In this document: positions 2,810 to 32,859 of the stretch, one piece after another
Position numbering within the stretch: position 1 is the first letter of the stretch
Layout: every line of letters begins with the position of its first letter
Virus record (IMG/VR): IMGVR_UViG_3300044846_005229
Span: 215,340 to 279,339 of that record
Direction: 5' to 3' (one strand)
Length of the DNA stretch: 64,000 nucleotides
Notes under the pieces: generated by a model
Seen by the model: only the letters and a program-made list of their open reading frames with translations
Database searches by the model: none
What the model was told of the DNA's origin: nothing
Made by a program: the position numbers and the translations under genes

Positions 2810-3730
2810 CTAGTTCACCCTGAGACAAGTCAAGTTGGCGGGTAGTTCCCGATAAAAGTCTCGATTCGGCAACATGTTCGCCACATAGAAGTGATCGATA
2901 AGGCCATCAAAAACCTCAAAACCCTTCGAGAAGATTCCATGGGTGATATACAAGTCGATGCGGGATGGCTCGTATTTTTTCAGAACCTTGGCAAGTTCAA
3001 TAAAGGTCCGACCACCATCGCAAATATCGTCAACAATAAGAAGGTTCTTCCCTTTGTAATCGCCGTCTTGGATCTCCGTTCGCAGGATTTCCCCATTTTC
3101 AGGGTTACGGACCTTAGTGGCATACTTGACTTCAGTAGACCCTCTAAATCTAGCAGCTACTTCCGCCCGTGGCACTGCGCCTTTATCAGGGGCAATGATT
3201 ACGGTGGTGGGGTCCCACTCCATGCCTGAAGGTATCAATTCAAACTTACTCAAAAGGGAATCAACCTGATCGTTAACAAAGTTGGTGAATTCCCCAAAGA
3301 TGCCCTCAGCTATAGGGCTATGAACATCCCACGTTGCCAAGAGGTCGCACTCGCCCAAATACGGCCTGAGGGAATTAGCAAACACCGACAGGGAGAAAGC
3401 TTCGCCTTCAGCACAAACTCTATCCTGGCGGCTATAGGGGAGATAGGGGATAAAAAGTTCCAACTTCCAAGGCTTGGGGAGCCCATCCCTCACTCTTTTA
3501 ATCGCATCCAAAATAAGCAAAAGTTTCACCCATTCTTCGCCTTTGCCGTCGATGTCAGCAGTGACGAAGATTTCGGAGTATTCAGACAGACTATCAAGGT
3601 TAACTCCGTCTAAGATTCTAACTTGATGCTCTCCAGCCGAGAAAGTGAAGGTTGAGTAATTGATCTCTGTAGGAGGTTTCCCCTCGATTAGATCCCTCGT
3701 TAGATTGGTTGCAGTTATGTTGATTGTCAT
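2810..3730 (-). CDS. prs: ribose-phosphate pyrophosphokinase-family protein (probable Adps of NARP1)
   Basis: FSAGE, PYLPYSRQDR, DVHS, APDKGA, IVDDICDGGRTF (PRPP loop), THGIFS. Confidence 0.92.
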   Translation of the reverse strand: MTINITATNLTRDLIEGKPPTEINYSTFTFSAGEHQVRILDGVNLDSLSEYSEIFVTADIDGKGEEWVKLLLILDAIKRVRDGLPKPWKLELFIPYLPYSRQDRVCAEGEAFSLSVFANSLRPYLGECDLLATWDVHSPIAEGIFGEFTNFVNDQVDSLLSKFELIPSGMEWDPTTVIIAPDKGAVPRAEVAARFRGSTEVKYATKVRNPENGEILRTEIQDGDYKGKNLLIVDDICDGGRTFIELAKVLKKYEPSRIDLYITHGIFSKGFEVFDGLIDHFYVANMLPNRDFYRELPANLTCLRVN

Positions 3731-3917: not shown

Positions 3918-4766
3918 TCAGAACTTAAAGCCGAGACCGATAGTGCCGACGGGGGCGTAAGCCGTTCCAGCAACACCGTTTTCCTGAGTCGGGAACTTCA
4001 GATCAGCGAAACCAACCAGGGACGATGTAAAAGCACGCTCCACACCGGCAACGAATACAAACTGAGAACCTTGACCAATGCTGGTCTGGTAGTTGGCTTC
4101 CCCATCGTTCGTCAATGCCCATTGGCCACCGGCACCGAGGTAGAGGTTAGTGCCACTAACGAAAGTACCACCGATGGTACGCCCAGCCAGGGAAACGTCT
4201 ACGGTCCCCAGAACACCGATAGCAGAACCAATTTGGCTATCAGGGCCCGCAGCGAAGTTCACATAGGGACGAGCTGAGATGGCAGTACCGTAGACTTCAG
4301 CCACTGGGAAACGTCCCTGAAGGGTACCACCAGCGATAGTACGATTGTTGCTATAGGTGTCGCTGCTAACGCCTTGGCGATTCAGGTTAACGCCTACGCC
4401 AACATAATTACCAACTCCAACTGCTTTCCGAGTTGCCGTATCTTCAAGGGCAGAAATACGAGCGTTGGTAACTGCGATAGCCGCACGAGCCTCGTCTGCA
4501 ATGCGACGATCTGCTTGGCTCAGTGTGTCATAAACCCGGTCAACGCAAGCACTCATGAGAGCTACGCTTTCGTAGCGGGTGGTGGGATTGCTACCACGGA
4601 AAGTGCCATCGGGATAACCAGCAACGCAACCATACTTTTCAGCTAGGTTTTGAAGGGCACCGTAGGCCCAATTTGTAGGAGAAGAGTCCGTAAACCGTGG
4701 TGCGGCGAACGCAGGGGTGGTAAAGGAAGCGATAGCTGCTAATGTAGCAATAATTCGATTTTTCAT
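3918..4766 (-). CDS. SLH-domain outer-membrane porin-like protein
   Basis: signal peptide (PAFA), SLH motif FTD..PTNWAYGAL..L.EKYGCVAGYPDGTFRG...TRYE, amphipathic beta-strands, C-terminal GLGFKF. Confidence 0.85.
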   Translation of the reverse strand: MKNRIIATLAAIASFTTPAFAAPRFTDSSPTNWAYGALQNLAEKYGCVAGYPDGTFRGSNPTTRYESVALMSACVDRVYDTLSQADRRIADEARAAIAVTNARISALEDTATRKAVGVGNYVGVGVNLNRQGVSSDTYSNNRTIAGGTLQGRFPVAEVYGTAISARPYVNFAAGPDSQIGSAIGVLGTVDVSLAGRTIGGTFVSGTNLYLGAGGQWALTNDGEANYQTSIGQGSQFVFVAGVERAFTSSLVGFADLKFPTQENGVAGTAYAPVGTIGLGFKF

Positions 4767-4789
4767 TTTCATTTTGTTTGTGTTTTGTC

Positions 4790-4905
4790 TGTACAGATCC
4801 GGGTTACAAATCCCGGAATGTGATTGTGGGGTTATGAACCCCGGTGCAAATAGCACTTTGCCCTCTCAGGGTTACAATCACCTTGCTATTGGGTCGTTTA
4901 TTGGG
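4790..4905 (-). promoter_or_regulatory. structured 5' leader of SLH-porin gene (possible pseudoknot)
   Basis: crossing pairings AATAGCA/TGCTATT and GTGATTGT/ACAATCAC plus three local hairpins. Confidence 0.4.
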
Positions 4906-11323: not shown

Positions 11324-12892
11324 TCACCCTAGGGGGACCATCCGCCGTCTAATCCGAGTCGATGGAACTTCGATATAAGTCAAATGTTCTTTGGCTCTTG
11401 TCACTTGGACATAACATAAGTTGTTTTCTTGAATAATTTCCCAATCTTTTCTCGCCCACTTACTTGGGCTATAAGCATTCATACCTAGTGCATAAACATG
11501 ACCCCATTCTTTGCCTTTAGAGCGATGCACTGTGGACAGGGTCAAAATGGACTGGCCCTTTGACGAATCGCTATCTCCAAACAACTCTTTAATTTTATCG
11601 ATCAATACACTGATTGGATCATCCAGTTTGCATTGTTCCATCAAAACCCTTAAGGTTTCTGCTTGGTCTTCAATGTCATCGCATTTTGTATAATCCTCGT
11701 CGTCCCTGGCTTTGGCCATGGCTTTTATGTACCAGTTGGCTACTTTGGACTCTAGTTCGGACACCTCATCACAATCCCATCGGTTTATTAACTTAATTAG
11801 ACCATCTCCAATAGCCCGTCCCTCTACCCTGCATGAAATACCCTTCTTGATAAGCTTAAAAGCCAACTCAACCAGGGGCTTCGTTACTCTGCACAAGATA
11901 GCATCGCTCGGGCTAAGGTTGGGGCTCTTCAATAAATCTTCCAACTTTAGGGAATCTACAATGCCGTCAGGCGCACCATCAAATGCCTTAATGTGGGGCA
12001 CCCACCTTTGGGCCTCCTTGACAATGAGCTTTGGACAACGGAAAGTTGTTGTCAGCGGGAGATTGATGGTGTTGAATTCTTTAGCAATTAAATCCATTGC
12101 ATTGTGGTCAGCACCAGTGTACGCATTGATCGACTGATGGCTATCCCCAACAGCAATTAGACGCCCATTAGGGGCAAGCATCATCTTAATGAGCTTACGT
12201 CTTACGGGGTTAGTATCCTGTGCTTCATCTAGGAGGACCCAGTCGTATTGCTTAGATTTTAACCCCAAAAGGACTGGCCCATATACCATGTCATCGAAGT
12301 CAATTATTTTCGGGATAGCCCTATTACTTTCTTTTAGGACAGCACGAGCTTCTTTGATTCCGTCACTTAGTGATGCAAACTTAGGGAGAGCCAAATCCAG
12401 GGAAAAGTGATCAACCATGTGGTTCCAAGCCTGGGTATCATCAATGTTTGAAAAAATACCTATCCCAATTTGTTTGGCTTTTGATGCAGTATTTATGGCA
12501 AATGTGCGCAAATAAGGGTTTTTAACGACAGAGTCTGCAATTTTTTTGAGTTTTTTGTACCCGTCTAGCTCTACCCTTGGGTAAGAAGAGCGTAAAATTT
12601 TATACCCGAAACTATGAACGGTGCCAATATTAAGTCGATCCCCGATTTGCATTGGGCTAGATCTTACTTCAAGTTCTTTGACAATGGCTTTGTTATAGGC
12701 GCAAAAACCCACATCGCCCTTAGTTCGAGGGAGAACTCCAAGTAAAACCTTAGTTTTTCCTGACCCTGCCACAGCTTCAACAAGTGCAGATCCTTCACCT
12801 TTGACGGCCCATTCTGCTACTGCATACTGCTCAGGGGATGGGGTTGGCCCTTTGGTTGTGGTTGAATCGTCAGTAGGTTGGGGTATTAGCAT
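11324..12892 (-). CDS. UvrD/Rep-family SF1 helicase
   Basis: EAVAGSGKT, DFDDM, LDEAQD, VGDSHQSI, TFRCP, STVHRSKGKEW, YVQVTRAK. Confidence 0.93.
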   Translation of the reverse strand: MLIPQPTDDSTTTKGPTPSPEQYAVAEWAVKGEGSALVEAVAGSGKTKVLLGVLPRTKGDVGFCAYNKAIVKELEVRSSPMQIGDRLNIGTVHSFGYKILRSSYPRVELDGYKKLKKIADSVVKNPYLRTFAINTASKAKQIGIGIFSNIDDTQAWNHMVDHFSLDLALPKFASLSDGIKEARAVLKESNRAIPKIIDFDDMVYGPVLLGLKSKQYDWVLLDEAQDTNPVRRKLIKMMLAPNGRLIAVGDSHQSINAYTGADHNAMDLIAKEFNTINLPLTTTFRCPKLIVKEAQRWVPHIKAFDGAPDGIVDSLKLEDLLKSPNLSPSDAILCRVTKPLVELAFKLIKKGISCRVEGRAIGDGLIKLINRWDCDEVSELESKVANWYIKAMAKARDDEDYTKCDDIEDQAETLRVLMEQCKLDDPISVLIDKIKELFGDSDSSKGQSILTLSTVHRSKGKEWGHVYALGMNAYSPSKWARKDWEIIQENNLCYVQVTRAKEHLTYIEVPSTRIRRRMVPLG

Positions 12893-12953
12893 CTTGGTTG
12901 CGGTTTGGTTGCGGTTTAGTAGTTGGTTGGTAGTTGGTTTATTGCTGGGTGTG

Positions 12954-13160
12954 TCAAATTAACTTATGGCAATATGGCAATGTGGCAATGTCCCAGTGGG
13001 GATCTCCTGAAAGATCCACCCATGCGCAGTATTTGCCGTTAACTGAAACGAAGAATACTTTAGTGCCTTTCCGCTGTTCGATGTTGATGTTGGGGTTTCC
13101 ACCCATTGAATTTATCAGGCGGTTCCTGGCTTTGTTTGAGATTGGAATTGCTCGGGCCAT
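12954..13160 (-). CDS. hypothetical protein
   Basis: 68 aa ORF directly behind consensus promoter. Confidence 0.7.
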   Translation of the reverse strand: MARAIPISNKARNRLINSMGGNPNINIEQRKGTKVFFVSVNGKYCAWVDLSGDPHWDIATLPYCHKLI

Positions 13161-13183
13161 TTTCGACTTTGGAACTTACTTCT

Positions 13184-13212
13184 ATTATAGTACATGCCTG
13201 CCGTAAAGTCAA
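13184..13212 (-). promoter_or_regulatory. sigma70-type promoter
   Basis: TTGACT-17 nt-TATAAT. Confidence 0.8.
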
Positions 13213-13233
13213 TGGCCCCAAGGTTAACTACCT

Positions 13234-13719
13234 TTAGTTAAAACTAGGCTCTAGCAATAGTGCCAGCATTTCCTGAATAGTTTTGTAGACGGGGTCTTCA
13301 GGTGAGAAGGAAAACTTTTGAGTTGCTTTATTGTCGATCCATTCGCGGATGCCGGTTCCAAACTCAGTTGACCTTGCATACCAATCACATACCATCTCAG
13401 CAACATAGACTTTCGGCATGTCGTGGATGCTACCCCAGTATTCGGGGTGATGTGGGTTCACGGACTGATGATGTTTGATGACTTCAGAAAGTAAAGGGTC
13501 TGAATGAAAAAGGTGGGCAAACTCTATACCTTTGAATTTAGAATTATCATGGATTTGCCCGTTGGCAATTAGGTTGCGACCAAGCTCAATTTCACCACGC
13601 TTTATTAGTTTGAGCCCCAGCTTATAGCAGCCCCTTTGAACATTCTGAATGTGGTTAAAAACAAGTTCTATTTTGTCGATGGATTCAGTTTCGATTGTCA
13701 TTTGGGGAGTGCCTGGCAT
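13234..13719 (-). CDS. HD-like phosphohydrolase (DUF5662-like)
   Basis: H...V, HDNSKF, HH...NPHHPEYW, EMVCDW. Confidence 0.75.
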   Translation of the reverse strand: MPGTPQMTIETESIDKIELVFNHIQNVQRGCYKLGLKLIKRGEIELGRNLIANGQIHDNSKFKGIEFAHLFHSDPLLSEVIKHHQSVNPHHPEYWGSIHDMPKVYVAEMVCDWYARSTEFGTGIREWIDNKATQKFSFSPEDPVYKTIQEMLALLLEPSFN

Positions 13720-13760
13720 TCATCATTGATACCTAAGCTATTACCCTGCTTTACCGGGCT

Positions 13761-14885
13761 CTAGCAATGATAGTGATAGAATTTTTCTATGGTATCACCA
13801 CACAAATAGTTGATTAATTCGTCATCAATCGTGTTTGGTAAAACGCACTCATTTTTCATTACGTGGTCGGCTTCGTCAAATAGTCGGTTTACAATAGAAA
13901 TAAGTTCGCTATAGGTGACCCTACCATACTTAATATCAAGAAGGAACTCTGCGTCACCGACCAATTTTCTATCTACGAATAACTTACCGGCCCGCATCCC
14001 TTCAATAGCCATTTTCATAAGCCTCACGCAATGACTAGCATTCTTACCATCATACCCACAAGCCCGTTCAATTTCAGATCGCTTGACATTTCTATTCGTC
14101 AACCAATCTTGATAGTTGCCCCATCTTTTTAGGTCTGCCCGGTATTGCTGACTGGAATGAAGCAAGGCCATGTATTCATCACTTGCCCTTGTGATTTTTT
14201 GTGTTTCGTCAAAGCATTGCGTTGGCAGAACACTCTGTTTCAGAATACCTTTCCAATCAATCTGGTTGTTAAGTAGCTCATACAGCTCTGTTGAGGGTTG
14301 ATAGTATTCAATTCTATCTTTAATCAACAGATACAAATACTCAATAAACGACTCGATCTGCGACGGTGTTAAGCTCGGTGAAGGAACTCCGTAGTCTTCC
14401 CACTCTGGTTTCCTTGTTGGTGGATCCCGCAGCCATTTACGGTGAGTTTCCATCTTTTTGATTTGAGACTTTGCATACTGGACAAATGTGCCAGAGATTC
14501 TTTTGGAGATTAGTTTTGTTCGATTGTTGATCAGGGACTGCCCAAGGTAATCAAGGTAGATATAGCTATCGGGGGTCTGCCAAAGCATCTCCAGGATGTT
14601 GGGGTTTTGCGACCGTAACAGGCTGAGGTATCGCCTGATGCCATAAACTACTGAGTCGGAATTGTCTAATTCAGGAAATCTTGTCCTAAAAGTTGGTTCC
14701 CCGTCATGCACCCACCCTTTATCCTTTTGCTCAAATGTTTCTAATGTAGTATAAAATCTCCTTGGTGCAACACAGATACCTTTAAAGTCAAGGTCTGACA
14801 TTTCAGTATTTAGGCCATAGGCGTGACTACCTGACTTACAGAATAGAATCATTCCATCTTCAATTTCCTTTCGTGTAATTGTCAT
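13761..14885 (-). CDS. predicted nucleotidyltransferase (Pol-beta superfamily, RlaP/YcgL-like)
   Basis: GSHAYGLNT..SDLDFKG, NPNILEML, GYDGKNASH.VRL. Confidence 0.88.
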   Translation of the reverse strand: MTITRKEIEDGMILFCKSGSHAYGLNTEMSDLDFKGICVAPRRFYTTLETFEQKDKGWVHDGEPTFRTRFPELDNSDSVVYGIRRYLSLLRSQNPNILEMLWQTPDSYIYLDYLGQSLINNRTKLISKRISGTFVQYAKSQIKKMETHRKWLRDPPTRKPEWEDYGVPSPSLTPSQIESFIEYLYLLIKDRIEYYQPSTELYELLNNQIDWKGILKQSVLPTQCFDETQKITRASDEYMALLHSSQQYRADLKRWGNYQDWLTNRNVKRSEIERACGYDGKNASHCVRLMKMAIEGMRAGKLFVDRKLVGDAEFLLDIKYGRVTYSELISIVNRLFDEADHVMKNECVLPNTIDDELINYLCGDTIEKFYHYHC

Positions 14886-15924: not shown

Positions 15925-16173
15925 TCATTGGTTTTTAGTGTTATTTAATTTGATTTCTAATGATAGGACTCTTAGGGTCATCTCCTCTGCCCTGGTAGCC
16001 ATCTCCTCGGCTCTGAGAGCCATGCGTTCAGCTTTGTAAGCCATTTCCTCAGCCTTGAGCGCCATTTCCTCAGCTTTGAGCAACACTTCTTCGGCATTAA
16101 GAGCCGGGGTACGTTTGTTTATGGGCGGCAATGGTTGCTTCATCCACAATGGCAGATATGCTGGGCTCCACAT
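15925..16173 (-). CDS. heptad-repeat coiled-coil protein
   Basis: six (K/R/N)AEEMAL-like repeats. Confidence 0.6.
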   Translation of the reverse strand: MWSPAYLPLWMKQPLPPINKRTPALNAEEVLLKAEEMALKAEEMAYKAERMALRAEEMATRAEEMTLRVLSLEIKLNNTKNQ

Positions 16174-16194: not shown

Positions 16195-16803
16195 TTAGTT
16201 TGAACCCAGAACGAACCGAGCGAATCGCTTCACAACGATGTTTTCTCCCACAGTAGCAGCGAAGTTCTTGGTATAAGTTTCGATAGTCATCGTGCCATCT
16301 TTGATATAAGGTTGGTCCATCAGGGACATTTCCTTAAAGCGTTTGGCTACACGACCTACAACAATTCTGCTACGCATTGCTTCTGGCTTTTTGGCAAGGT
16401 CTTCTTTGCCCATTTCGATTCGAGTCTCGTCCAATAGGATAGACTCAGGAATGTCGGATATTGAGACATAGCTTACAGAAGGGCACGCCGCAACTTGCAT
16501 TGCCAAAGTGCGAACGAACTCTTGGAATGGCCCAGATTTTGCCACAAAATCAGTTTCGCAATTCACTTCGATGAGTACACCGATCTTGCCACCTGTATGG
16601 ATATAACTGGATACAGTCCCTTCCAGGGTTGTACGGCCAATCTTTCCATCAGCTAAGACAATACCTTTTTGACGTAGCCAAGTGATTGCCCCGGCTTCGT
16701 CGCCTTGGGAGGCTTCCAGTGCTTCTTTGCAAAGCATCATGCCTGCCCCGGTTTTTTCACGGAGCGCTTTAATTTGTGGAATCGTGGGTTGGGTGTAAGT
16801 CAT
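16195..16803 (-). CDS. tsf: translation elongation factor Ts (short cyanobacterial type)
   Basis: IKALREKTGAGMMLCKEAL, EG.VSSYIHTGGKIGVLIEVNCETDFVA, LMDQPYIKD, GENIVVKRFARF. Confidence 0.96.
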   Translation of the reverse strand: MTYTQPTIPQIKALREKTGAGMMLCKEALEASQGDEAGAITWLRQKGIVLADGKIGRTTLEGTVSSYIHTGGKIGVLIEVNCETDFVAKSGPFQEFVRTLAMQVAACPSVSYVSISDIPESILLDETRIEMGKEDLAKKPEAMRSRIVVGRVAKRFKEMSLMDQPYIKDGTMTIETYTKNFAATVGENIVVKRFARFVLGSN

Positions 16804-16863
16804 TTTGTTTTAGGTACTTATTTGAAGAGTGGGGCATTGGGATCCACTTCGGTGCCTGTTAAT

Positions 16864-17202
16864 TCAAGCTGGGCAGGGACCTTCGGGTCCCTCATAGTCA
16901 TCATCACCGTAGTCATCATCTTCCCAGTCATCGTCCTCAATATAATCAAAGGGACAATACCCAGAAGATAAATCGTGGTCTTCAAAAAGCTTTACAAACG
17001 CAAGATCATCGGATACCATTGTGATTTCGCCTTCGGTTATGACACCGGAAATTTCACTGTGCTTCCCAAGGACTTCGCCAAAGTAGATTTCTTTTTGGCT
17101 GTTAATAAGTCGCTTTACTTCTTCAGGGTCAGCTACGAAGATTCCTTCGAGGCTACCCATCCGGCCGTGGTCTTGGTGAAACTTGTAGATGGCTTTATTC
17201 AT
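16864..17202 (-). CDS. conserved phage hypothetical protein
   Basis: GRMGSLEGIFVA...YFGEVLGKHSEI, acidic tail. Confidence 0.75.
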   Translation of the reverse strand: MNKAIYKFHQDHGRMGSLEGIFVADPEEVKRLINSQKEIYFGEVLGKHSEISGVITEGEITMVSDDLAFVKLFEDHDLSSGYCPFDYIEDDDWEDDDYGDDDYEGPEGPCPA

Positions 17203-17630
17203 TTGTTTGTGTATGGTGGTACTTCAACCGCTGACTGTTAGTAAGCTAATTGAATTAGATGGGGATGACTCTGACAGCAGACTGTAGAGTAAGAGGCATG
17301 TATTCATACAGGTGACGGGAATTAAGGCTTGAGTTCTCTACTCCAGCTTCTTTCCAAACATTTCCGTCCCAATAGGCCCATACACAAAAAGTGCCCAAGG
17401 AACCAGAAGTATCACCCCAAATATACCCCTTAGCCCAAATAGGGCGGCCATCTTTCGGGGCCAGTTCAATTTTAAGGAAGCAAATAGGACGCTCCTCCGA
17501 TGTTGTTTCGTGGCTTAAAGTGTCGTGTTGTTCGTCTTTCATGGAATAAGTTTAGCGTTTCTAAGTTGCAGTAACAAGCCGGAGAACCGAACCGGGCGGG
17601 AGGGTTAACCGTCGTTTTATAAAAGTCGGA

Positions 17631-18533
17631 CTAGGTAAACTTCGGTAAGTTCCGGAAGTAGGTGATTAAGTCCATTTCCTTGAACGAGGTTCGTTTAATA
17701 CTCCGGCTGGTCTTTGCGTAGGTGCCTTCGACAGCGTCGATATACATGGTGAATGTGCCGTCATTGCCCATATAGAACTTGGACCACCCTGCGTTTGTCA
17801 ACAATCTCCTAATGTTAAGTTGTTCAACGGCTAGATTGTCGAACGACAAGTGGGTCTTTCCAAGGAAAGATGGTATAGTTCGATACCATTCGGTTAGCAA
17901 CTGTTTGGTTTTGTCGCTATAGTACTGAATCCCTCGTCCGAACGTTTTGTACCCTAGGACCAAAGTTTTGCTGTTTTCCAGAGCGCTAAGATCCGACAAG
18001 ACTTCCGGGGAATGAACCCCTGCGATCACGTGGAACACAGTGTGCGGATTGTTTTCTAGAAATTGCTTGAGAAGAGGTAAGTTTGTACCTGTGACAGAAA
18101 CTCCGATTCCTTTGACCAAGCCTTTCCTACTTAGGGTACTCAAAAGAAACTCGTAGGGTTTCAAGTGTCTTTCGTTCACAGTTAGATTTGATACTAACCC
18201 CCTGTCGCGTACTTCGGTTAAAAACGGAATGAGTTCAGGATGGGAAAGCGGGTTACCACCACCTATGGCCAGCTCCACTCCTGCTGGCAAGGGCTTCAGT
18301 ATGGAAAGCAAACGGTTCAGATCCCCAGGCTTCCCCCCAAGGGTGGAATTTTCGTGACAGTAGGGGCACGCTAGATCACAAAAGTTTGTAATTTTCACGT
18401 CAATACTCTCCGGGTGTCTCGCCCACGGGGGGTTGTTGTCAAGGGTTTCTCGGATCTTAGTCCCATTCGAGCATAAGGTAACTTTGCAGTTGCCGTTTTT
18501 GTAACTGTGAAGAATTGACTCAGTAGTTGTCAT
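17631..18533 (-). CDS. radical SAM protein
   Basis: KITNFCDLACPYCHE (CxxxCxxC), AIGGGNPL, NLTVN; start reassigned to MTTTES. Confidence 0.92.
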   Translation of the reverse strand: MTTTESILHSYKNGNCKVTLCSNGTKIRETLDNNPPWARHPESIDVKITNFCDLACPYCHENSTLGGKPGDLNRLLSILKPLPAGVELAIGGGNPLSHPELIPFLTEVRDRGLVSNLTVNERHLKPYEFLLSTLSRKGLVKGIGVSVTGTNLPLLKQFLENNPHTVFHVIAGVHSPEVLSDLSALENSKTLVLGYKTFGRGIQYYSDKTKQLLTEWYRTIPSFLGKTHLSFDNLAVEQLNIRRLLTNAGWSKFYMGNDGTFTMYIDAVEGTYAKTSRSIKRTSFKEMDLITYFRNLPKFT

Positions 18534-18981
18534 TGTCGGTGTGAAGGACGCTGCGGGGGTTGAAGATAAACTGTCGCAAGAGTTCGGGGTCTTCAAACAA
18601 GTAGTCTAACTGACCTCCTTCTACAGACTGGTGGTCAATGTAGGAAGGATCTTTACCTTCCTCCCACGACGTGTTAAGGTCATATACAACACTGAAGCAA
18701 CCGGTTTGCTGTTTGATCACCGAATTTAGAACTTCCCTGTATTCCTCACTTTTCTCTCCTGCCCAAGATTCAACATAGATAGCCGCGTAATTAGCCTTAA
18801 TGTCGGCGTCAGTGTAGTCTTCAATTCCCCAACCGAATTGACCTCCGATGAGTACAACGTTTCCCTCTTCGTCCAATGGCAGGGTGCTTAGTAGATCAGT
18901 AGAGTCACCTGAGGATATACTGAGTGAGTGAGTGCTTGAGCTATTGGTCTCAAATACTGCTTGTCGAATTTGTGTAGTCAT
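18520..18981 (-). CDS. FETNSSSTHS-motif protein, overlapping the radical SAM gene
   Basis: IRQAVFETNSSSTHSLSI, YIDHQS, C-terminal TDNDN. Confidence 0.8.
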   Translation of the reverse strand: MTTQIRQAVFETNSSSTHSLSISSGDSTDLLSTLPLDEEGNVVLIGGQFGWGIEDYTDADIKANYAAIYVESWAGEKSEEYREVLNSVIKQQTGCFSVVYDLNTSWEEGKDPSYIDHQSVEGGQLDYLFEDPELLRQFIFNPRSVLHTDNDNY

Positions 18982-19315
18982 TTTGCTTTGGTGTTTGATA
19001 AGAAATTGGAATGTCTATATCCTTGGTAAAGGAAATTTCGGATTGAACTCAGGAAGACCCAACCCATCCTGGAAGTTGCAAGACAATTAGCTGATCTGAC
19101 TTCTCAAGAATTGTCAGGCAGTAGTTTCTCCAAAACCCATAATCAGAAGGCAGTTCAACACCACAGTCAAAGCAAAAGTGCATGAGCAACGGTGAGAAGG
19201 CCACCAGTCCTTTCGAGGCAAGGTCGGCAAGTTCATAGGTGACGGCATCCATGCGGGTTTGTGTGACTGCAGGATTGCTATCGCCGTATGGTGCGGCTAG
19301 GTGGATTAAAGGCAT
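18951..19315 (-). pseudogene. DUF1937/nucleoside deoxyribosyltransferase-like gene interrupted by in-frame TGA at 19049-19051
   Basis: HLAAPY...FSPL...W...LPGWVGSS*VQSEISFTKDIDIPI continues family pattern GW..S.GV..EI past the stop. Confidence 0.65.
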
Positions 19316-19932: not shown

Positions 19933-20031
19933 CGGGGATCACACCCTGGTGGCACTATGGTGGGAGTCCGTGTAAATGGTTTCCATTGCAGGTTTTTTCG
20001 TACGCGGGGGCAATGCGTGTGGTGTCATGAC

Positions 20032-20115
20032 TATCGTAGGTTGTTTGCTTCCGGGTGTGGGTGCGGATTCCCGTACAAAAAGGTTCGGTAATTACACCAT
20101 CGGGAGCCGAAGTCA
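20032..20115. repeat. intergenic promoter-cassette repeat, copy 1
   Basis: near-identical to 32765-32859 and 33231-33325. Confidence 0.9.
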
Positions 20116-20922
20116 ATCAGAAGCGAAGGGTCTCTTCACCGGGTTGCATCGTTTGCGGTGGGGCGGTCATCGTCTGGGCCGAATCGGTCATCGCAGGTAA
20201 TAGCAAGGCGCCCAGTAACCGGGGCTTGACCCAGATCGAGCCGGAATCCATACCCAGCGAGGCAATTGGATTGGCGTTGACGCTGGTGTGGGTTGATAGG
20301 TGTATTGGCTGCTCATGGCTATGCCCCCTCGGCATGGGGCAGCGGGATAGCGTGGGCGGTAATGAACCGCGCCTGAGCATTGTTCCATCGGCATATTGCG
20401 CGATGAACCGTTCCGCATTCCTTAGTTGAAGTGTGGCCGTTGTCACAATAAACCCGCCACATATCACGAAAATCCCAATCAAGAACCTTACCTTTTGCAT
20501 TACACCTTGCACAATTAGCTATTGCCGGGGTGTGTACTTTCTGCTTCACGCTTCCACCTCCCCGGCCTGGGGCGTCAGGATAGAGAGAGTACTTACATGC
20601 TCGTTCCATGCAGCTCGCAGATAATCTTTGTATACCTGGTAAGGGACACCCTTTTTAGAGCACGCTTCGATTACACTCTCTGCTTTTACGCCAGGGCCCC
20701 ATCTGTGTTGACAGCGACATTTAGCATAGTTACCATTATTAAAGACCCAAGTACGTGGAAACTCTCCGCAATTAGGGCATAGATCCCACCCGGCTGTGGA
20801 TTTAAGAGGTTCGTACCATTCGCCACAGCTGTCTTCCCACCTGTAGGTTTCAGTCATTGCCTGTGCGGTAGAGGTTGAATGTCGGTCAGTCATTTGGTTG
20901 GTTTTATCGCTAATAGGATTTA

Positions 20923-21480
20923 TCACGACCGCACCTCCCTGGCTTGGGGAATGGTAACAAGACCAGTAGGCGCAAGTCCACGGGCTATGCTGCCTATGAC
21001 TCGCAGCACAGAAAGATCCAATTCTTCCTGGGGCCCATTATTGTCGAAATAAATATCAGCATCACCTACTACAAGCTCCATTGAATATGCGCTTTCCGGT
21101 GGCCTGCGCTTTGAGGCGTCAACCCAGATAACGTGATCAAACAACCCAGCCTCGCGGCAGGCGTTAAATTCATCCCGTTTTCGCATTCCAACATACACAT
21201 CATACCCACGGCTCAACATTGTCTTGGCCGTTCTCGTCTTGTCGGGGGTATTGTATTCGGAAATTAAGTCTGCCCATGTTTTTCGGTGGTTTACTCGATC
21301 GGCAAACATCTCATCAAAGGTTTTGTAGCGCTGGCGGCCCCATGTGGGCCAAATAAATTCCTCTCCGACAAAAAGTGAAGAAGAGGAAAACGAGAGGTCC
21401 ATTTTGCCGCAGATTTTTTCGGCGACGGTATCCTTGCCGTGGCGGGCGTGGCCGATGATTAGGAGTTTGGGTTTAGTCAT
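20923..21480 (-). CDS. dNMP kinase-like P-loop protein
   Basis: LLIIGHARHGKDTVAE; start reassigned to MTKPK. Confidence 0.75.
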   Translation of the reverse strand: MTKPKLLIIGHARHGKDTVAEKICGKMDLSFSSSSLFVGEEFIWPTWGRQRYKTFDEMFADRVNHRKTWADLISEYNTPDKTRTAKTMLSRGYDVYVGMRKRDEFNACREAGLFDHVIWVDASKRRPPESAYSMELVVGDADIYFDNNGPQEELDLSVLRVIGSIARGLAPTGLVTIPQAREVRS

Positions 21481-21502
21481 TTTGGATAAGTGGTGTGGTC
21501 GC

Positions 21503-22392
21503 TCATGGCTGGGACTCCACGGCATGGGGTAAAGGAATGGCATTGTGAGGGAGCGTGTGGGTTTCTTGACCGTTTGACCGGCTATAGCTCCAGTTGCTAT
21601 ACCTTGAGTCACTCTCCGGGTGAAACCTCCAGCACTGCCCTTCCGCATCGTAATACTCCTCCTCTAATGGCTGTTCACTCGTTGCCACCGGCACCCCGCC
21701 GGGGCGGGCTTGGCTATTGCCAGGCGAACCTCGGTAGCCACGTCCAGTAAGAACGAGTCCGAGCAGCTCTGATTCACTAGCCCGCCAACGGCCTGGCCGC
21801 AGTCAATCAAAACATATCGAAGAAAGGCAGCACGCGATTCCTGCTGCTGAAGCAACGTGGCGGCGCGGGCGAGCTTGGCGCTTGCGTCGGGGTACTCATC
21901 AGCGGTCTTGGCAACCCCTTCCCCTAGCCACGTCACCAACTCCCTTACCTCCGCAGCGAGCACCTCTGGCGCTGGCAAGGTGGCGGGACGGCCCCAATGC
22001 TCCAGCGCCTCGCCGATCAGCGCAGTTAGCTGGCTCTGGGCCACGGCGGGCCAACCATCGGGCCAGTCAGGGCGGCTTTCAATCCCCCGATCAATAGCAA
22101 CATCGCCGTCGTCTGTTTCCGGCGCTGGTGGGGTGGCGGGGGTACGGTTCAGCGCTCGGACAACCTCCTCGATCGGAACCATCGCCCCATCAAAAAGAAT
22201 TGCGGCGCCGTCTCCGCAGACACCTTCAGACCAGCGACCCTCCCCCCCCGGCTGAGCCAGGGCGGCTCGGGCGCGGGTGATCAGATCGCGGTATTCGTGA
22301 TAGGGGTTGGCGCCGTCGTATTCAGCCAACGGTTGCAATAGCTCGGCACACAGTGCGCGAAAGTCAGTGTTAATGTCTGGGTTAGTCATCAT
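21503..22392 (-). CDS. mosaic phage protein, probable frameshift near 21695
   Basis: DFRALCAELL...RARAALAQP modules; C-terminal PVA.SE...DAEGQCW module lies in another frame after a G-run. Confidence 0.55.
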
Positions 22393-23513
22393 AGTAAGTT
22401 TTCGGGTTCCAGGGGTGGAACGGTAAGGTTTCCCCAACGGGCGAGAATGGCGCGGGCAAAGGCGATCACGTGGTAACTGTGCGTTGCATGGCTCCACGTA
22501 GCAAGCCACAAAGCGTCTAGCTCGGCTGTAGTCGGCATCTCCCCCTCCGGCTCGGCCAAAGCAGCGGGCGGCACCAGCCACTCCAGGTTGCACTGCTCGC
22601 ACTGGGAGATAAATGCTTCCAGCGATTCGGCCCAAACGTGGCCGATCCCGCGTGATCCAACCTGCACAAGCTCGGGAGACCATTCGGGTGAATGAACGGT
22701 TCTGGCTATGTCTCGGCAAGTGTCAGCCTTGCCATGATCCAAGTCAACAATACAGACGATTGCTGCGGTATGGGCCAGTTCCCAAAGCTGGCGATAATCG
22801 CGTGAGGTTGGGTAGTTGGCAGTTGGGACGATCATGGTGCCTCCGTTGCGGTGATTTGCTGTTGCTCTAATCCTGAGGCAATAAATACCCCCCTCAACTT
22901 ATCAACTACATCTGTTTTGAACGTCTCAACCTGCGAACGCAACTCTTCCAAAGAGTCGCATTCAAACGGTTTCTCTTGCATTTCTTCGCCCAGGATCAAT
23001 ACAGTCACGGTGCCATCCCATTTTGGTCCGTAGTGGGTCTTTGGGGGATAGAAGCGACTGCTAAAACTAACCACTGGCCCGTCATAGTCCAATTTAAATC
23101 CGCAATCCCATCTCCAGGTCGGCTCATGCAGCTTGTAACTATTGGTGTTGGCCTGTGATTCCCATTGGTAGGCCTGGTCCCAACTGGTTGGGCAATCTCC
23201 CAAAGGTTCACCGCCATCGAAAATAATTTGGTTGTTTGTGGTGGGCATGTCAATGTGGTTGGTGCTCATGTTGCCTCCTTAATTGGAATACACAGCCAGT
23301 AGCGATGCTGTTCGTTGACGCGGTGGCTAGGCCTTTCTGGGTCGATATCCCAGGTTGTACGCGCCTCCATCAATGGATAGTCAGCGCCGGGAAAGCCATA
23401 GCTAGTAAACATATCGCATTCAAATGATGCTGTGCCAAATGGCACAAGCTCAGGGTGCCGAGCGCGAATCGCTGCGAAGACTCTGAGGCTGGTTTCGATT
23501 GTTCTGTAGTCCT

Positions 23514-24569
23514 TCATCGGTCAACCTCCCGGCGAAGATCATTGGCGCTGCCTTTGTTCCCGACAAGATCAAGCCAGGCCGCTACCTCGCGGATTGCGGC
23601 GCGGGTTGCCTCTTCATCGCTGGTCGCCATGCCTTTCCAGAAAGAGTGTAAGGCACTCTTCACCAATCCCCCGGCAGGCAAGACCGGTGAAGCAGGTTGG
23701 GCGACAACATCAGATTGCCCCCACCGATTGATTTCGGCCCACTCTTGGTCAGTGTATTCGCTCTCGCCATTCACATGGGGGGCGGCAAGTTGGGTAACTG
23801 GCGGGGCAAGCTCCCGTAGGTCAACCAGGGACTGCGCCGCAGGATCTCCCCACTTTGCTTGCTTGTTTATGAAGGCCCACGCCTTTGCGTCCAGATCTTG
23901 TTCTGAATAGGGGCCAGGCGGGATTTGCTCCGATTCGGGCTGGGTCAGGGCACCCCGCTCTTCCCCCGGATACGGATCGCAAACCTCCAACCGTGCGCAT
24001 GTCATTGCAGTCTGCTCCAAAACATCACCCCAGGGGATACCGGCGTTTTCCGTAATCGACATTAATACCAGCAAAACATCAGCAGCTTCACTGAGCGGAT
24101 CGCCATGCTTGCCCCGGAGGGCTTCGGTCAACTCGGAAGCTTCCAGGTGAAGGTACACGCCTCGGCTAGACCAACTAAGGTCCCACCCGCGCTTTTTGCA
24201 CATGGCCAACACACGGGCTGGCAGTGCGTTTGGGGGCTGAGCGGCTCCGAAGTCGTTTGCCTCTATTAAATCAATGGCGTCCAGAATCCGAGAACAATGC
24301 CATACTCGTTCGTTATAGTCCTCTGATTCGTCTGCCAACACGGCACGCAAACCGATAACAATTCCTTCCCATGTCATTCCAGTTCCCCCAGGGGGCTGAG
24401 TGGCGGCCTCTGACGAGGCCAAAGCGTCTTCAATCTCAGACAAAGTCTTCTGTACGTCAAGCAACTGAGCGTCCTTGGATTCTGCTGAGACGCAGCAAAG
24501 GCCCTCAGACACCTCATTCAATGCCTCTTTAACCTTCTCGGAGCATAGTGCCATAAGATTGCTATTCAT
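23514..24569 (-). CDS. mosaic protein with MazG-like NTP pyrophosphohydrolase domain
   Basis: LHLEASELTEALRGK.GDPLSEAADVLLVL. Confidence 0.7.
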   Translation of the reverse strand: MNSNLMALCSEKVKEALNEVSEGLCCVSAESKDAQLLDVQKTLSEIEDALASSEAATQPPGGTGMTWEGIVIGLRAVLADESEDYNERVWHCSRILDAIDLIEANDFGAAQPPNALPARVLAMCKKRGWDLSWSSRGVYLHLEASELTEALRGKHGDPLSEAADVLLVLMSITENAGIPWGDVLEQTAMTCARLEVCDPYPGEERGALTQPESEQIPPGPYSEQDLDAKAWAFINKQAKWGDPAAQSLVDLRELAPPVTQLAAPHVNGESEYTDQEWAEINRWGQSDVVAQPASPVLPAGGLVKSALHSFWKGMATSDEEATRAAIREVAAWLDLVGNKGSANDLRREVDR

Positions 24570-25402: not shown

Positions 25403-26625
25403 GTTTGTTTTAGGGGTTACAAGGTTTGTCAGAAAAGGTTTAATGCCATCGCCTGGGCCCAATACAGGATCAGGGTCTAAAGGGCAATTATGACGTTGAG
25501 TTTATTACCAGTGGGGACATCAAAATAAATTTCAAAGTCCGGGGAGTGTTTAGTTGCCATTTCCCCAAAGCTCTTCATAAGTTTGCTTGATGGTGTCTTC
25601 CTTATTAAGTGGGTGATTGTCACTCCATTCGCCAATTTCTTTTGATTGAATAGACATTATCTTTGGGTAGAGGTGCCTTATGTTTTCAATGAAATACACA
25701 ATATCATCTTCAGGCATGTCCTCAAAACCCAATACTAAAACTTCAACTTTGTATGCTTTCATTGTCCCCCGGTTGCTTCGAAACACCCCTGATCGTAACC
25801 TTCGTCGTACATTTCTTGGGCAAATTTTAGAAGTCCATGGAGGAGCTTAGATTTTACGACGAATGACGATGGTTCAATTCTTACTAGGTCACCCATGCCA
25901 TCTATAGCTGACCCCTTTCTGATAAAGTTGAAGTGTTGACTAGCAATCTCAAAAATTTGTTCGTCAGTCATTATCGAAATAGTGTAGGTTGGTTTGGGGG
26001 GGGGGGGGGGGGGTTCCCCATGTAGCTATGGTACTCTAATCGATGGGCCAGGTAAAGGCCGGTTAACCGCCCTACCCGTCAAACTCTGAAAGTTCTTTCT
26101 TAGCGGCTTCCTTCCCAAGCAATCTCCTTTCTTTTTTATGCAAGACCTTTCCATGAGAACAAAGTTTGCATCGTGGGTTTCCGCAATCGAGTGGGTCTTT
26201 GCTATAGACCTTGCCAAAAGTGATGCAATCAGGGTTAATGCCGTTATTCAAACTACCTAGCAATCTTAACCATTTATTCCTCAAACGTTCCGCATGGTGG
26301 CGTCTTCGGGCTGACTTTGCCATTTTGGTTCTAGGGCCCTGGACAATTGATTAAACTACTGGGGCTATGGACGAAGAGGACCAGCTCGTCCTGATCCAAG
26401 TAACCAGCCACCAATAAGACTAAAAAAATGTGCCAAAAAAATGTGTCAGGGAAAGGTCCTGGAATTGCGAAGCCAATGGAGACTAAAAGGGTTGCGACAG
26501 TGAGTAGAATGTAAGGGTTAGGCATTGGGTTTTGTAGAGGGGTGATCCGATGCCATTATAGGGCAAGTTTTCCCTGGGGAAACGGTCGGTTTTCCGAACC
26601 CATGGTTAAAACTCCGAAGCCAAAA

Positions 26626-26707
26626 TACCGAATGTCGGACTCGAACCGACACGCCTTGCGGCAATCGCTTTTGAGGCGGCCATGACTACCAATTCCATCA
26701 ATTCGGC
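26626..26707 (-). tRNA. trnL: tRNA-Leu(CAA)
   Basis: cloverleaf with long variable arm, loop CT-CAA-AA, GTTCGAGTC T-loop. Confidence 0.88.
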
Positions 26708-26835
26708 ATTTGCCCTGAGTAGCCAGCTCAAGGACTTTTTGGATGTTTGAACCGTCGCTCATTTCACCCTCCATTTTGATATGGGAGATGGGCTCCTTTA
26801 AGGAGTTAACTCCCGAGCAAGTTACTGATTGCTCA

Positions 26836-26949
26836 CCGATAGAATTTTGCTAACCTAAGTTAACAATGCACAGGTATTAATACCTGAGGGGCTATCTCCC
26901 AAAGTCTCAAGAATTCTTGAGACGCTTTTTACCCAGATATTCCGGGCAC
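26836..26949. repeat. 114-bp exact repeat, copy 1
   Basis: identical to 42372-42485. Confidence 0.95.
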
Positions 26950-26986
26950 ACCGTCTCTTTTTGGCTGGCCCAGAGAAGACGGGCTA

Positions 26987-27067
26987 TGGGGGCAGGGGGA
27001 CTCGAACCCCCACGGCCGAAGCCAGAAGTTTTTAAGACTTCCGTGTCTACCATTCCACCATGCTCCC
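26987..27067 (-). tRNA. trnL: tRNA-Leu(TAA)
   Basis: GAAGT-CT-TAA-AA-ACTTC, long variable arm. Confidence 0.92.
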
Positions 27068-27424
27068 TTGTGTGCCCCATCATAGCACCCCTTGGGTAAA
27101 AGTCGGGGCCTTTGGGGTTAGTTCGTGGCTAAATCCGAAGATGAACTAAACCCAAAGCAAACCCCTAGCCAATCAACCAATACTCAAGTAAGCCCTAGCC
27201 TCTACAATTTCCAAGCCATCCCCACCAAAGGTAAACGAAGTTTGGACTCCCCTGTGATTTGAAAATGGGCTAGAGATTGTCACCGTTAGGGAATTAGGGT
27301 TATCTAACTCCCCATAGGAAACTCTGCCCAGGGTCAACCAGTTAGATTGGAATCTATTGATGATAGACTCTTTTGAAAGTCGTGGGTATTGGAATTGCAT
27401 TTGTTTGCTAAGGCTGCCCCTAAA

Positions 27425-27868
27425 TCAGGCAGTGAGTACACATGGGGTAGATTTACCCAACTTGCTGAAATTGGCTGTTGTCACTAGTTTTACTGATTGA
27501 CTGCCGGACATCTTGGCATCCGATTGAGCACCAGCCAGCAATTTCATTTGCTTGAGGGTAGCCAGCATTTCGGTAGCTTCCTTGGCGCCATCACGGTTGG
27601 CGATAGCAAGTTTGGAATGGTTTTTGCGGGCAGAGCCATAATCACTCCCATATTGCGCCCACCAAGCATCTTGCTGCTCGATGTCCCAATCATAGGAAAA
27701 CACAGGCACATCAGAGACGGCGTGTTGGTTGGTGCGGATTTGATTTTTGCGGTTGCGTTGGCCCTGGCTGAGTTGGCTGTAGGCTTGTTTCCAGTCGGCA
27801 ATGGCTTGAAGGTAGGTTTCCTTAGTAGTGAAGGCGGTGAAGGTGGTGAATGCGGCTAGAGTTGTCAT
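27425..27868 (-). CDS. hypothetical protein
   Basis: 147 aa ORF behind promoter-like sequence. Confidence 0.7.
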   Translation of the reverse strand: MTTLAAFTTFTAFTTKETYLQAIADWKQAYSQLSQGQRNRKNQIRTNQHAVSDVPVFSYDWDIEQQDAWWAQYGSDYGSARKNHSKLAIANRDGAKEATEMLATLKQMKLLAGAQSDAKMSGSQSVKLVTTANFSKLGKSTPCVLTA

Positions 27869-27963
27869 TGTTTTTGTTGTGTGTGTGTGTTTCGGTGTGG
27901 GCTATCGACCGAGTTAGTGTAAGATGGGCCCGTGGTCGGGGCAATACGGTAAACCGACCAGGT

Positions 27964-28518
27964 TCATTTAGGGTGGGTGTCTGCTGATCTAAAACCCACT
28001 TGAGTGGGCCTGCTGTTCGGACCCTTGAACGGCACATTAACTCTGTGATCCACTATCGTTACCGGTGAATCTAAACTCAAAGTGTTACCCCCCAGATTAA
28101 TTCTTTTCACTTGGACATACTCTGCAACTTTTTGCAGATCTTCAAGTACCGCGCCACCGTTGGCCACGACCATGTCAGCAACTGCCATCAGGCTCCGGTA
28201 CTGCTTATCGTCAAACTTTAAGCCGTTGGCTTCTTTGAGAATACACAGAATAACTTTTTCTGGCCTTTTATTACTATCATCTACTACCTCAGCAATAGAG
28301 TAAAACCCTTTTATTTCAGGCGTAATGACATAGAGGCAAAAATCGCAATTTTTTCTTTGCTCAATTTCCTCAAGCCGTGCCCTGTCTGTCCATTCTTCGA
28401 CTACGGGGTTAAAATATCCCAGCAGCCGCTGCTCCAGTAGGATTATAAGTTCTTCGCGCCAAGTGGATCCATTACAAGTGCCCCCAAGGAACACTTTTGT
28501 TTGATTGTCTGAAGTCAT
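27964..28518 (-). CDS. nucleoside 2-deoxyribosyltransferase-like protein
   Basis: KVFLGGTCNGSTWRE, YFNPVVEEW, LYVITP..KGFYSIAEVVDDSNKRP. Confidence 0.8.
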   Translation of the reverse strand: MTSDNQTKVFLGGTCNGSTWREELIILLEQRLLGYFNPVVEEWTDRARLEEIEQRKNCDFCLYVITPEIKGFYSIAEVVDDSNKRPEKVILCILKEANGLKFDDKQYRSLMAVADMVVANGGAVLEDLQKVAEYVQVKRINLGGNTLSLDSPVTIVDHRVNVPFKGPNSRPTQVGFRSADTHPK

Positions 28519-28627
28519 TTTGCTGGTGTTTGTATGTTGGTGAACTTGCTGTTAAAGCTGTGTTTGTTACGAGCCTATTGTAGCTTAAAGGGGGAGCTGA
28601 GTCAAGGGGGAGGCCAAACCCCGACCA

Positions 28628-29860
28628 TCACTCAATCCAATGGGGGACCACTCGGCTTGTGTCAAGGACAATCGGCCGGTCATGATCCCTAATGATGATG
28701 CCTGCGGGTTCATTACCGACAACCCAAGACCCGATGACTGCCCGATTGTCGCCGTCCTGGAAAAGATCGGCTTTTTTCTGGTAGATGCGGGGTCCATCAT
28801 ACATGCCAGTAGTTCTAGAGGTTACCACACCTGACTCAACAATGTCAATGTTGGCCCCTTCCCGGCTCAGCATAGGCTTTACCACGTAGGATGTGGGATT
28901 TAGTTTTCCGGATGAAAACGCCTCTAATTGTTCTGGTGTTCCATGCTCCCGGAGATTCAGCCAATCCCAATCATCCACCGGGATGCCACCCTCAGTGAAA
29001 CTGGCTGGAAGGATGTTAGGGTGGTCTGGAAACATCTCATGGAGAATAGGCAAGATGCCCTTATTGCTCAGGATTGATTTCCAGATTGGCTCTACAATTC
29101 CAGAGGAACCTTTAATAGTGTGTAATCCAAACTCATCTCCCATCATCCATTCCCATGGGTATAGCTTGAACCAATACTTAATCGGATTCTCTTGGATGTC
29201 AGTGAAGTTTTCTCCATTCCAGCCAATGTCCCCCAAATCAATAAAATCTGTAGTTAACCCAGCCTGAGTAGCTAAATCTTGGAAGTAAACCAGGGTCTGA
29301 TACTCCTCTAGGCTTTCAGAATAACCTGCAAATACAAACTTGTGGCCGAACGGTACCCTTTGCCTGATTTCCTTGAATTGGTCAATAAGTTTTTCATGCA
29401 AAGAGTTGAATTGGTCTTTTCCGGGCTTAACATCCTGCAACCAGAACCATTGCATTAGCGCCGATTCAATAACCATTGTAGGAGTGTCTGCATTGTATTC
29501 CAACATCTTAGGTTGGCTGTCCCCCGTATATGCAAAGTCAAACCTGCCATATAAAGATGGGTCGCATTGCTTCCAGGATTTGGAAATCGCGGAGTGGTAT
29601 GCTGAGGGAATTCCGATTTTTGCCATTAACTCTGAATCACCCACAACCTTGTCCACAGCATCGAGGCACCGGAGTTGGCATTCCCGTGTGGCATCTTCAA
29701 GTTCGTCAATTTCAGCCATAGAAAACTCATAGGCCACAGATTCATCCCAATAGGTTCCCTCCCCATCTTTTGATGAGGTACCCGATGTGTGGTAGGTGAA
29801 CCCAATCTCTTCAGCTTTTTCTTGCCAATTAACGCGAGGTTGTAGGGTGTGACGTTTCAT
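28628..29860 (-). CDS. glutathionylspermidine synthase-family ATP-grasp ligase (YgiC-like)
   Basis: YWDES, LYGRFDFAY, KMLEYNADTPT, DQFNSLHE, FKLYPWEW, EPIWKSILSNK, KPMLSREGAN, IGSWVV. Confidence 0.93.
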   Translation of the reverse strand: MKRHTLQPRVNWQEKAEEIGFTYHTSGTSSKDGEGTYWDESVAYEFSMAEIDELEDATRECQLRCLDAVDKVVGDSELMAKIGIPSAYHSAISKSWKQCDPSLYGRFDFAYTGDSQPKMLEYNADTPTMVIESALMQWFWLQDVKPGKDQFNSLHEKLIDQFKEIRQRVPFGHKFVFAGYSESLEEYQTLVYFQDLATQAGLTTDFIDLGDIGWNGENFTDIQENPIKYWFKLYPWEWMMGDEFGLHTIKGSSGIVEPIWKSILSNKGILPILHEMFPDHPNILPASFTEGGIPVDDWDWLNLREHGTPEQLEAFSSGKLNPTSYVVKPMLSREGANIDIVESGVVTSRTTGMYDGPRIYQKKADLFQDGDNRAVIGSWVVGNEPAGIIIRDHDRPIVLDTSRVVPHWIE

Positions 29861-29944
29861 TTTGCTGTTTGGGTTGGCGGGTTGGTGCCCGGTATGATAA
29901 TTTGGGAGTCTACCCAGCCACTATAGCACAGCTTAACCCTGCAA

Positions 29945-32738: not shown

Positions 32739-32764
32739 AGTCTGCTTAGGGTTTGGGGTCGGGG

Positions 32765-32859
32765 GTGTTGGTGCTATTATAGGTCGTTTACTTTCGGGTG
32801 TGGGTGCGGATTCCCGTACAAAAAGGTTCGGTAATTACACCATCGGGAGCCGAAGTCAA
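32765..32859. repeat. intergenic promoter-cassette repeat, copy 2
   Basis: runs from stop codon of upstream gene to TATAAT box. Confidence 0.92.

Follow-up and report, generated by a model that had tools for sequence, protein, structure and literature searches.

Elongation factors G, Tu and Ts are found among the genes of the huge phages described by Al-Shayeb et al. (Nature, 2020), where they were hypothesized to keep translation efficient during infection (PMC7162821). Phage-encoded elongation factor Ts (EF-Ts) is thus already known, and the gene presented here is a well-documented example. In the cultured Caulobacter phage Colossus, the EF-Ts-like protein gp247 was proposed to raise the pool of charged EF-Tu (Gill et al. 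2012; PMC3556154). Gp247 is a fragment of 98 residues comprising subdomain N only, whereas the present protein is full-length for the short class of EF-Ts (about 196–200 residues), with an N-terminal domain, a core and dimerization strands. Phage Q-beta likewise exploits the EF-Tu–EF-Ts pair, but it takes both proteins from the host as polymerase subunits, whereas the present DNA phage encodes its own EF-Ts.

Two cellular systems are close to the phage protein. EF-Ts from Thermus thermophilus (1AIP, 1TFE), which works as a dimer in an (EF-Tu–EF-Ts)2 complex (PMC9529903), shares its minimal architecture and matches it end to end. The identity is however about 40%, and the Thermus protein has an aspartate in place of Leu24 and Cys190 in place of an alanine. 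The chromosomal EF-Ts of cyanobacteria is the nearest cellular relative, with 52–64% identity, and forms a clade with the phage proteins. It differs in that its gene follows rpsB and its product mostly carries a C-terminal module of about 20 residues.

The present EF-Ts resembles those of the huge phages in being encoded by a phage genome larger than 200 kb with many tRNAs. Unlike in that study, where EF-Ts was listed without analysis (PMC7162821), it can be placed here in a monophyletic clade derived from cyanobacteria, with evidence of selection, a residue signature, loss of the C-terminal tail and no accompanying EF-Tu. No paper was found on this clade or its signature residues. Hardly any of the phage translation factors on record has been studied, and this tsf gene offers a clean case for testing, with a small, easily purified protein that has a clear partner in cyanobacterial EF-Tu and in which both the three-residue signature and the missing module can be reverted and assayed.

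The tsf gene and the genome that carries it

The window, which is the whole 64-kb stretch of DNA that was analyzed, is the final part (215340–279339) of a 279,339-bp IMG/VR virus record with direct terminal repeats, a CheckV completeness of 100% and a single tsf gene. This gene occupies positions 16195–16803 of the window on the minus strand, as an ATG-started open reading frame (ORF) of 202 codons. The protein reaches 144.5 bits against the NCBIfam equivalog TIGR00116 'tsf' (curated cut-off 104.05) and 99.7 bits against Pfam EF_TS (PF00889; E 2.1e-28, cut-off 27), both cut-offs being exceeded over its full length. The TDFV motif (T84-D85-F86-V87), the catalytic wedge of EF-Ts, is encoded at 16543–16554 on the minus strand. 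None of the PHROG families matches the protein, and a tblastn search of 50,697 phage records found matches in 13 only, all at 41% identity or less. These records were set aside as relatives on account of the low identity and because some do not look like clean phage genomes; at least one of the 13 (match H6) is a record titled as a Salmonella enterica genome and not a phage.

The original prediction, made from the DNA sequence, was of an intact 202-residue EF-Ts of the short type with a TDFV motif, uncommon in phages, surrounded by phage hypothetical genes and lacking its usual neighbor rpsB. The gene was found intact, as described, and the protein belongs to the short Thermus type, a type that acts as a dimer. 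The flanking ORFs are all phage-type or have no assigned role, rpsB is absent from the whole genome, and the rarity in phages holds broadly. The prediction did not extend to the age of the gene, its sharing by a clade of phages, its origin in cyanobacteria, the lost C-terminal module, the altered N-terminal domain or the earlier publications on phage EF-Ts.

The 279-kb genome has a GC content of 46.5%, an exact terminal repeat of 124 bp and about 460 ORFs, 405 of which are on the minus strand. Its largest ORFs encode virion and packaging proteins (tail fibers, tail sheath, baseplate wedge, head maturation protease, portal and large terminase subunit TerL) and enzymes of metabolism and replication (DNA polymerase, topoisomerase II, ribonucleotide reductase and nicotinamide phosphoribosyltransferase, NAMPT). 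It is a complete jumbo myovirus genome. Pfam scanning took in about 45 of the ORFs. Translation-supporting cargo other than tsf includes 21 tRNA genes, 17 of which form an array in the window (26625–45852, minus strand). A Thg1-like tRNA-His guanylyltransferase gene lies beside the array (46160–46933, minus strand; Pfam Thg1, 2e-27). In two contigs of the divergent EF-Ts sub-clades, L135 and L008 (viral record G005, 125 kb), a Thg1 gene is found 0.2–2 kb from tsf.

The flanks of tsf encode a phrog_5848 protein, a radical-SAM protein (phrog_16999), an RlaP-type nucleotidyltransferase, a DUF5662 protein and a UvrD-like helicase. The last three are encoded at 11324–14885, 1.3–5 kb downstream of tsf; the nucleotidyltransferase, of a type belonging to an RNA-repair pathway, is at 13761–14885 (Pfam), and the position of the DUF5662 gene near tsf is kept in relatives. 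Searches of the 279-kb genome for an EF-Tu-type GTPase (GTP_EFTU), for rpsB (Ribosomal_S2) and for peptide deformylase found none of them. An EF-Tu-type GTPase was likewise absent from 24 other EF-Ts-bearing viral records. Other members of the phage clade also lack rpsB in the contexts that were checked, which are phage-like. At the cyanobacterial loci L055 and L061, rpsB is immediately upstream of tsf; this rpsB–tsf operon arrangement of the cellular gene does not occur around the phage gene.

The 60-bp spacer 5' of tsf (16804–16863, minus strand) contains no obvious Shine-Dalgarno sequence and no strong sigma-70-like promoter on the minus strand, and scanning the surroundings of tsf on that strand for promoters and terminators gave nothing convincing. 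The gene is probably read within a long train of genes on the same strand.

The presence of host genes in viral bins is known to cause errors, and the exchange about PhiMa05 illustrates why viral identity needs checking before claims of this kind (PMC13623518). The gene could have been a piece of host DNA wrongly joined to a viral contig during assembly, or a passenger in decay. This is given next to no credence, as it is refuted by the data on identity, synteny, junctions, GC content and substitution rates. The tsf stretch is contained in 22 lake or freshwater metagenome DNA runs from about 18 studies. In three of these runs, X4 (records 12 and 13), X5 (records 18 and 19) and X7 (records 26 and 27), both junctions of tsf are bridged by contigs or unitigs with 0 differences and even depth. 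Synteny around tsf is preserved in contigs of 282 kb (ENA), 65 kb and 61 kb, and many independent assemblies place the gene in this same neighborhood. Continuity across the flanks had been named beforehand as a check on the prediction, and near-identity to a host gene combined with a coverage break as the sign of a chimera. The flanks were bridged on both sides in independent metagenomes without a break, and cellular tsf genes are at most about 59–64% identical to the phage gene. The GC content of tsf equals that of its flanks. A relic is further contradicted by a dN/dS of about 0.1 and the lack of broken copies, as detailed below. The 5-kb neighborhood of tsf gave no blastn match in the 50,697 phage records.

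Two variations were observed close to tsf. A contig of lake run X4 joins position 17200 to 19064 and leaves out 1,863 bases, the radical-SAM gene (17631–18596) among them; it may come from a strain variant without this gene or from a related phage. Just downstream of tsf, an 82-residue ORF (15925–16173) contains a repetitive AEEMALKAEEMAYKAERMALRAEEMATRAEEM stretch. Its variant in run X7 lacks 21 bases at position 16040, that is one repeat unit.

The window holds further cargo. Three genes are related to NAD, encoding nicotinamide phosphoribosyltransferase (1251–2744), a PRPP-synthetase-like protein (2810–3730) and quinolinate synthetase NadA (50474–51391). A glutathionylspermidine-synthase-like protein (28628–29860; Pfam GSP_synth, 1.4e-128) adjoins a DUF1190 protein (29945–30709), with which it possibly forms a polyamine-related pair. 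A 312-residue protein with an S-layer homology (SLH) domain, unusual as phage cargo, is encoded at 3918–4856. Two stretches are GC-rich, with 52–57% against a background of 46%. The first (20001–24000) contains four ORFs of 241–351 residues with no Pfam match, and the second (56001–60000) a gene for a 782-residue collagen-like tail fiber (58101–60449).

Architecture of the phage EF-Ts

The best match of known structure is T. thermophilus EF-Ts (1aip_C, E 1.7e-40), residues 6–195 of which align with residues 10–200 of the phage protein with one single-residue gap. EF-Ts from Escherichia coli (1efu_B) aligns in two pieces only. The AlphaFold2 (AF2) model of the phage protein has a pLDDT of 90.2. 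It superimposes in Foldseek onto 1aip_C (E 6e-18, TM-scores of 0.83 and 0.86) and onto the dimerization core of the Thermus protein (1tfe, TM-score of 0.91 by target). By alignment, the phage protein is of the short Thermus type, devoid of the coiled-coil insertion, the second core subdomain and the C-terminal module.

Residues 1–57 (16633–16803, minus strand) are predicted to form a UBA-like domain of three helices, comprising residues 8–18, 22–31 and 36–52 in the AF2 model, with a weak match to Pfam EF-Ts_N. In solved complexes, the N-terminal domain of EF-Ts touches domain I of EF-Tu. Named contacts with EF-Tu are K51, D80 and F81 of the E. coli protein and R13 and K24 of that from Mycobacterium tuberculosis (PMC9529903). 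Their equivalents are all retained in the phage protein: K54 for K51, D85 and F86 for D80 and F81, and R15 and K26 for R13 and K24. E. coli D80 and F81 are of vital importance to the EF-Tu interaction, and F81 plays a major part in the release of GDP (PMC9529903, PMC3556154). Within the TDFV motif, T, D and F do not vary in the 33 proteins of the phage clade, 92 cellular proteins and 5 distant phage proteins that were aligned. The V is almost invariant, being found in 32 of the 33 clade members and 89 of the 92 cellular proteins.

Three long strands (residues 61–68, 74–82 and 190–198) align with the dimerization domain of the Thermus protein (1TFE) and belong to the best-conserved parts in the comparison of phage with cyanobacterial EF-Ts. 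The Thermus homodimer is built on a β-sheet core and is stabilized by a disulfide bridge involving Cys190. This cysteine corresponds to an alanine in the phage protein, which by analogy probably also works as a dimer.

Within this conserved framework, column counts single out positions in the N-terminal domain where the phage clade departs from cellular EF-Ts. Position 24 (codon 16732–16734, minus strand; E. coli Asp21) is a leucine in 33/33 clade members, versus Asp or Glu in 92/92 cellular proteins. At position 27, Glu, Asp or Gln is found in all 33 versus Lys or Arg in 72 of the 92. The segment TGAGMM-D-CKKAL is thus altered in the phage protein by the replacement of its acidic residue by Leu and of the next Lys by Glu. 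Position 53 (codon 16645–16647, minus strand; E. coli Lys50), beside the retained Lys54, is a glycine in 30/33 of the clade and a lysine in 87/92 of the cellular proteins. No open-access paper was found that addresses the role of E. coli D21 or K50.

The other derived feature is the C-terminus. The phage protein ends in LGSN followed by the stop codon (16195–16206, minus strand). It lacks the module of about 20 residues (EGIEK..FA.EVAA) that is present in most cyanobacterial EF-Ts and in that of E. coli. After the LG pair, the tail consists of 0–5 residues in 33/33 members of the phage clade, while 22 cyanobacterial proteins were listed of which 17 have about 20 or more. The missing tail is the counterpart of the C-terminal domain of E. 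coli EF-Ts, which contacts domain I of EF-Tu (PMC9529903). As many other bacteria have an EF-Ts of about 198 residues that is likewise tail-less, loss of the tail is not exotic by itself. With three near-universal residues of the N-terminal domain replaced in addition to the lost module, affinity or kinetics may nevertheless differ from those of a plain extra copy.

Ancestry, selection and distribution among phages

A word search returned about 40 proteins of around 200 residues with 60–96% identity, followed by cyanobacterial EF-Ts. EF-Ts from Oxynema, Spirulina, Kamptonema and Cyanothece are 61–64% identical to the phage protein, and that of Nostocales has 314 residues. When one genome per species was considered, the best named cellular matches were all cyanobacteria (52–59%), other phyla reaching 51% at most; picocyanobacterial EF-Ts have an overall identity of 55–57%. 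IMG/VR contains 28 EF-Ts loci, 20 of which have 62–96% identity and lie on contigs as long as 277 kb. The EF-Ts that were found in other huge phages (L030–L035, 350–536 kb) are only 35–39% identical and fall outside the phage clade.

Comparison with cellular tsf genes and the calculation of dN/dS, two checks proposed together with the original prediction, were both in its favor. In a tree of 130 rows, the 33 phage proteins form one clade (SH-aLRT 99) on a stem branch of 0.42, grouping with cyanobacteria (99). In a tree of 62 rows, the phage clade has a support of 100/99 and joins the cyanobacteria with a support of 100/98. Monophyly of the cyanobacteria without the phage clade has a support of just 63/39 in this tree, and a clade of phage and picocyanobacterial proteins is not rejected by the AU test (p 0.42), so that the donor lineage is not narrowed within the cyanobacteria. 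The trees indicate that phage tsf is an old capture from cyanobacteria and not a recent one from the host. The 19 unique phage coding sequences are all intact. The Nei-Gojobori dN/dS has a median of 0.097 and a range of 0.055–0.30 over 50 pairs with 0.1 < dS < 1.5, which indicates that the phage EF-Ts is under purifying selection.

Relatives whose EF-Ts is 76–88% identical have TerL (65–67%), DNA polymerase (68%) and portal (77%) in common with the present phage as well, so that tsf was inherited within a diverged lineage. Judged by TerL, Synechococcus phage S-CBWM1 is the closest isolate, with 54% identity over 89% of the protein; S-TIM5-like cyanophages come next. S-CBWM1 is an estuarine cyanomyovirus of 139 kb that has 36 tRNAs and a small set of auxiliary genes (PMC7472177); no EF-Ts match was found in it by tblastn of the phage records. 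Photosynthesis cargo varies within the lineage: psbA is present at 272210–273082 (E 8.6e-86) in a 277-kb relative that is 98% complete (G001, IMGVR_UViG_3300044625_001067) and absent from the 279-kb genome. Together, the TerL kinship to S-CBWM1, psbA in this relative and the ancestry of tsf point to a likely cyanobacterial host, perhaps a picocyanobacterium. A second TerL-like ORF of about 470 residues, about 33% identical to TerL, adjoins TerL in relatives; the loci concerned are G000 55274–56692 (L040:274-1692) and the relatives L132 and L133. The equivalent neighbor of TerL in the 279-kb genome has no Pfam match.

The phage clade extends to a second kind of phage. A sub-clade with 62% identity includes the EF-Ts of G004, a 180-kb genome with a T4-type Gp23 capsid protein (E 2.5e-138). 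No detectable match to the TerL, DNA polymerase or portal of the present phage was found in G004, which has only a weak match to the TerL family profile. By these comparisons, one EF-Ts clade is common to an S-CBWM1-like jumbo lineage and a T4-like lineage, which points to phage-to-phage transfer and makes a tidy case of the spread of a host-derived gene between phages.

Proposed action on host EF-Tu

It is considered probable that the protein is a functional EF-Ts that stems from a single ancient capture from cyanobacteria, has been maintained by selection, and acts on host EF-Tu to sustain the translation of a jumbo phage. An ancestral tsf would have been captured once from a cyanobacterium, long ago, and trimmed to the minimal form of about 200 residues. 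Purifying selection would since have preserved this form, and it would have been handed around among at least two cyanophage-like lineages. As EF-Tu is not encoded by the phage, the phage EF-Ts would have to act on the host EF-Tu. [quoted passage not shown] The supply of EF-Tu-GTP-aminoacyl-tRNA would thereby be held high during the massive late synthesis of phage proteins, which would be the benefit to the phage. EF-Ts would support the translation load alongside the 21 tRNAs, Thg1 and the RlaP-type nucleotidyltransferase, and its support may coincide with falling expression of the host tsf. Set against this reading is that S-CBWM1, the closest isolate, manages without the gene. The proposal made with the original prediction, that the protein boosts or protects EF-Tu recycling, is plausible and agrees with the hypothesis published for huge phages (PMC7162821).

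The derived features raise the question of whether the phage protein does more than add to the host pool. It could be a specialized factor, whose remodeled EF-Tu-facing surface (L24, E27, G53 and no C-terminal module) would confer altered kinetics or partner specificity. Such a variant might maintain the cycling of EF-Tu in the face of a host stress response or an anti-phage system that targets either EF-Tu or EF-Ts, or might bias the formation of ternary complexes towards the needs of the phage. The fixed leucine at position 24 and the replaced lysine at position 53, the loss of the tail throughout the clade, the long stem branch and the retention of the clade in two different phage lineages are consistent with specialization. 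However, a tail-less EF-Ts is ordinary in free-living bacteria, residues 24, 27 and 53 may touch each other instead of EF-Tu, and no cyanobacterial defense system targeting EF-Tu or EF-Ts was identified; the reading is deemed unlikely, if a serious one. A small but real chance is also accorded to a re-engineered exchange factor in place of a spare part. After a single ancient capture, the module would have been lost and three near-universal charged residues of the N-terminal domain replaced throughout the clade (D to L, K to E and K to G), giving a variant that treats host EF-Tu differently and was useful enough for it to spread between unrelated cyanophage lineages, S-CBWM1-like jumbo and T4-like. 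Re-engineering could for example speed up release, make the factor tolerant of EF-Tu that is modified or inactivated by stress, or let it form mixed dimers with host EF-Ts.

Mixed dimers could also matter in their own right, as the original prediction had suggested: a phage subunit paired with host EF-Ts would alter the activity of the host pool instead of providing a separate enzyme. The architecture fits that of the dimeric Thermus protein including its core, and the three strands aligned with the dimerization domain are well conserved between the phage and cyanobacterial proteins. Homodimers would be equally serviceable however, and with just 55–57% identity to picocyanobacterial EF-Ts and an alanine at the site of the interchain Cys190, mixed dimers are judged improbable. 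A further reading is a role outside translation, in which EF-Ts together with host EF-Tu would scaffold or chaperone a phage enzyme in the manner of Q-beta replicase. This precedent is found among the PDB matches (3agp, 3mmp, 4q7j). The phage is however a DNA myovirus that encodes a DNA polymerase itself, a scaffold would not require an invariant catalytic TDF, and no partner gene is consistently linked to tsf, so that such moonlighting is very improbable.

Support of translation through host EF-Tu thus remains the preferred reading. If the phage form behaves like the host form, it would represent a simple dosage support of translation in jumbo cyanophages. If it behaves differently, it would show how viruses tune elongation in addition to initiation. 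The setting is one of freshwater lakes sampled in many studies. In a freshwater metatranscriptome, one contig of 437 nucleotides from a relative matches positions 16541–16816, covering the 5' part of tsf, with 6 differences; it hints weakly at transcription of the relative's copy of tsf, or may reflect carry-over of DNA.
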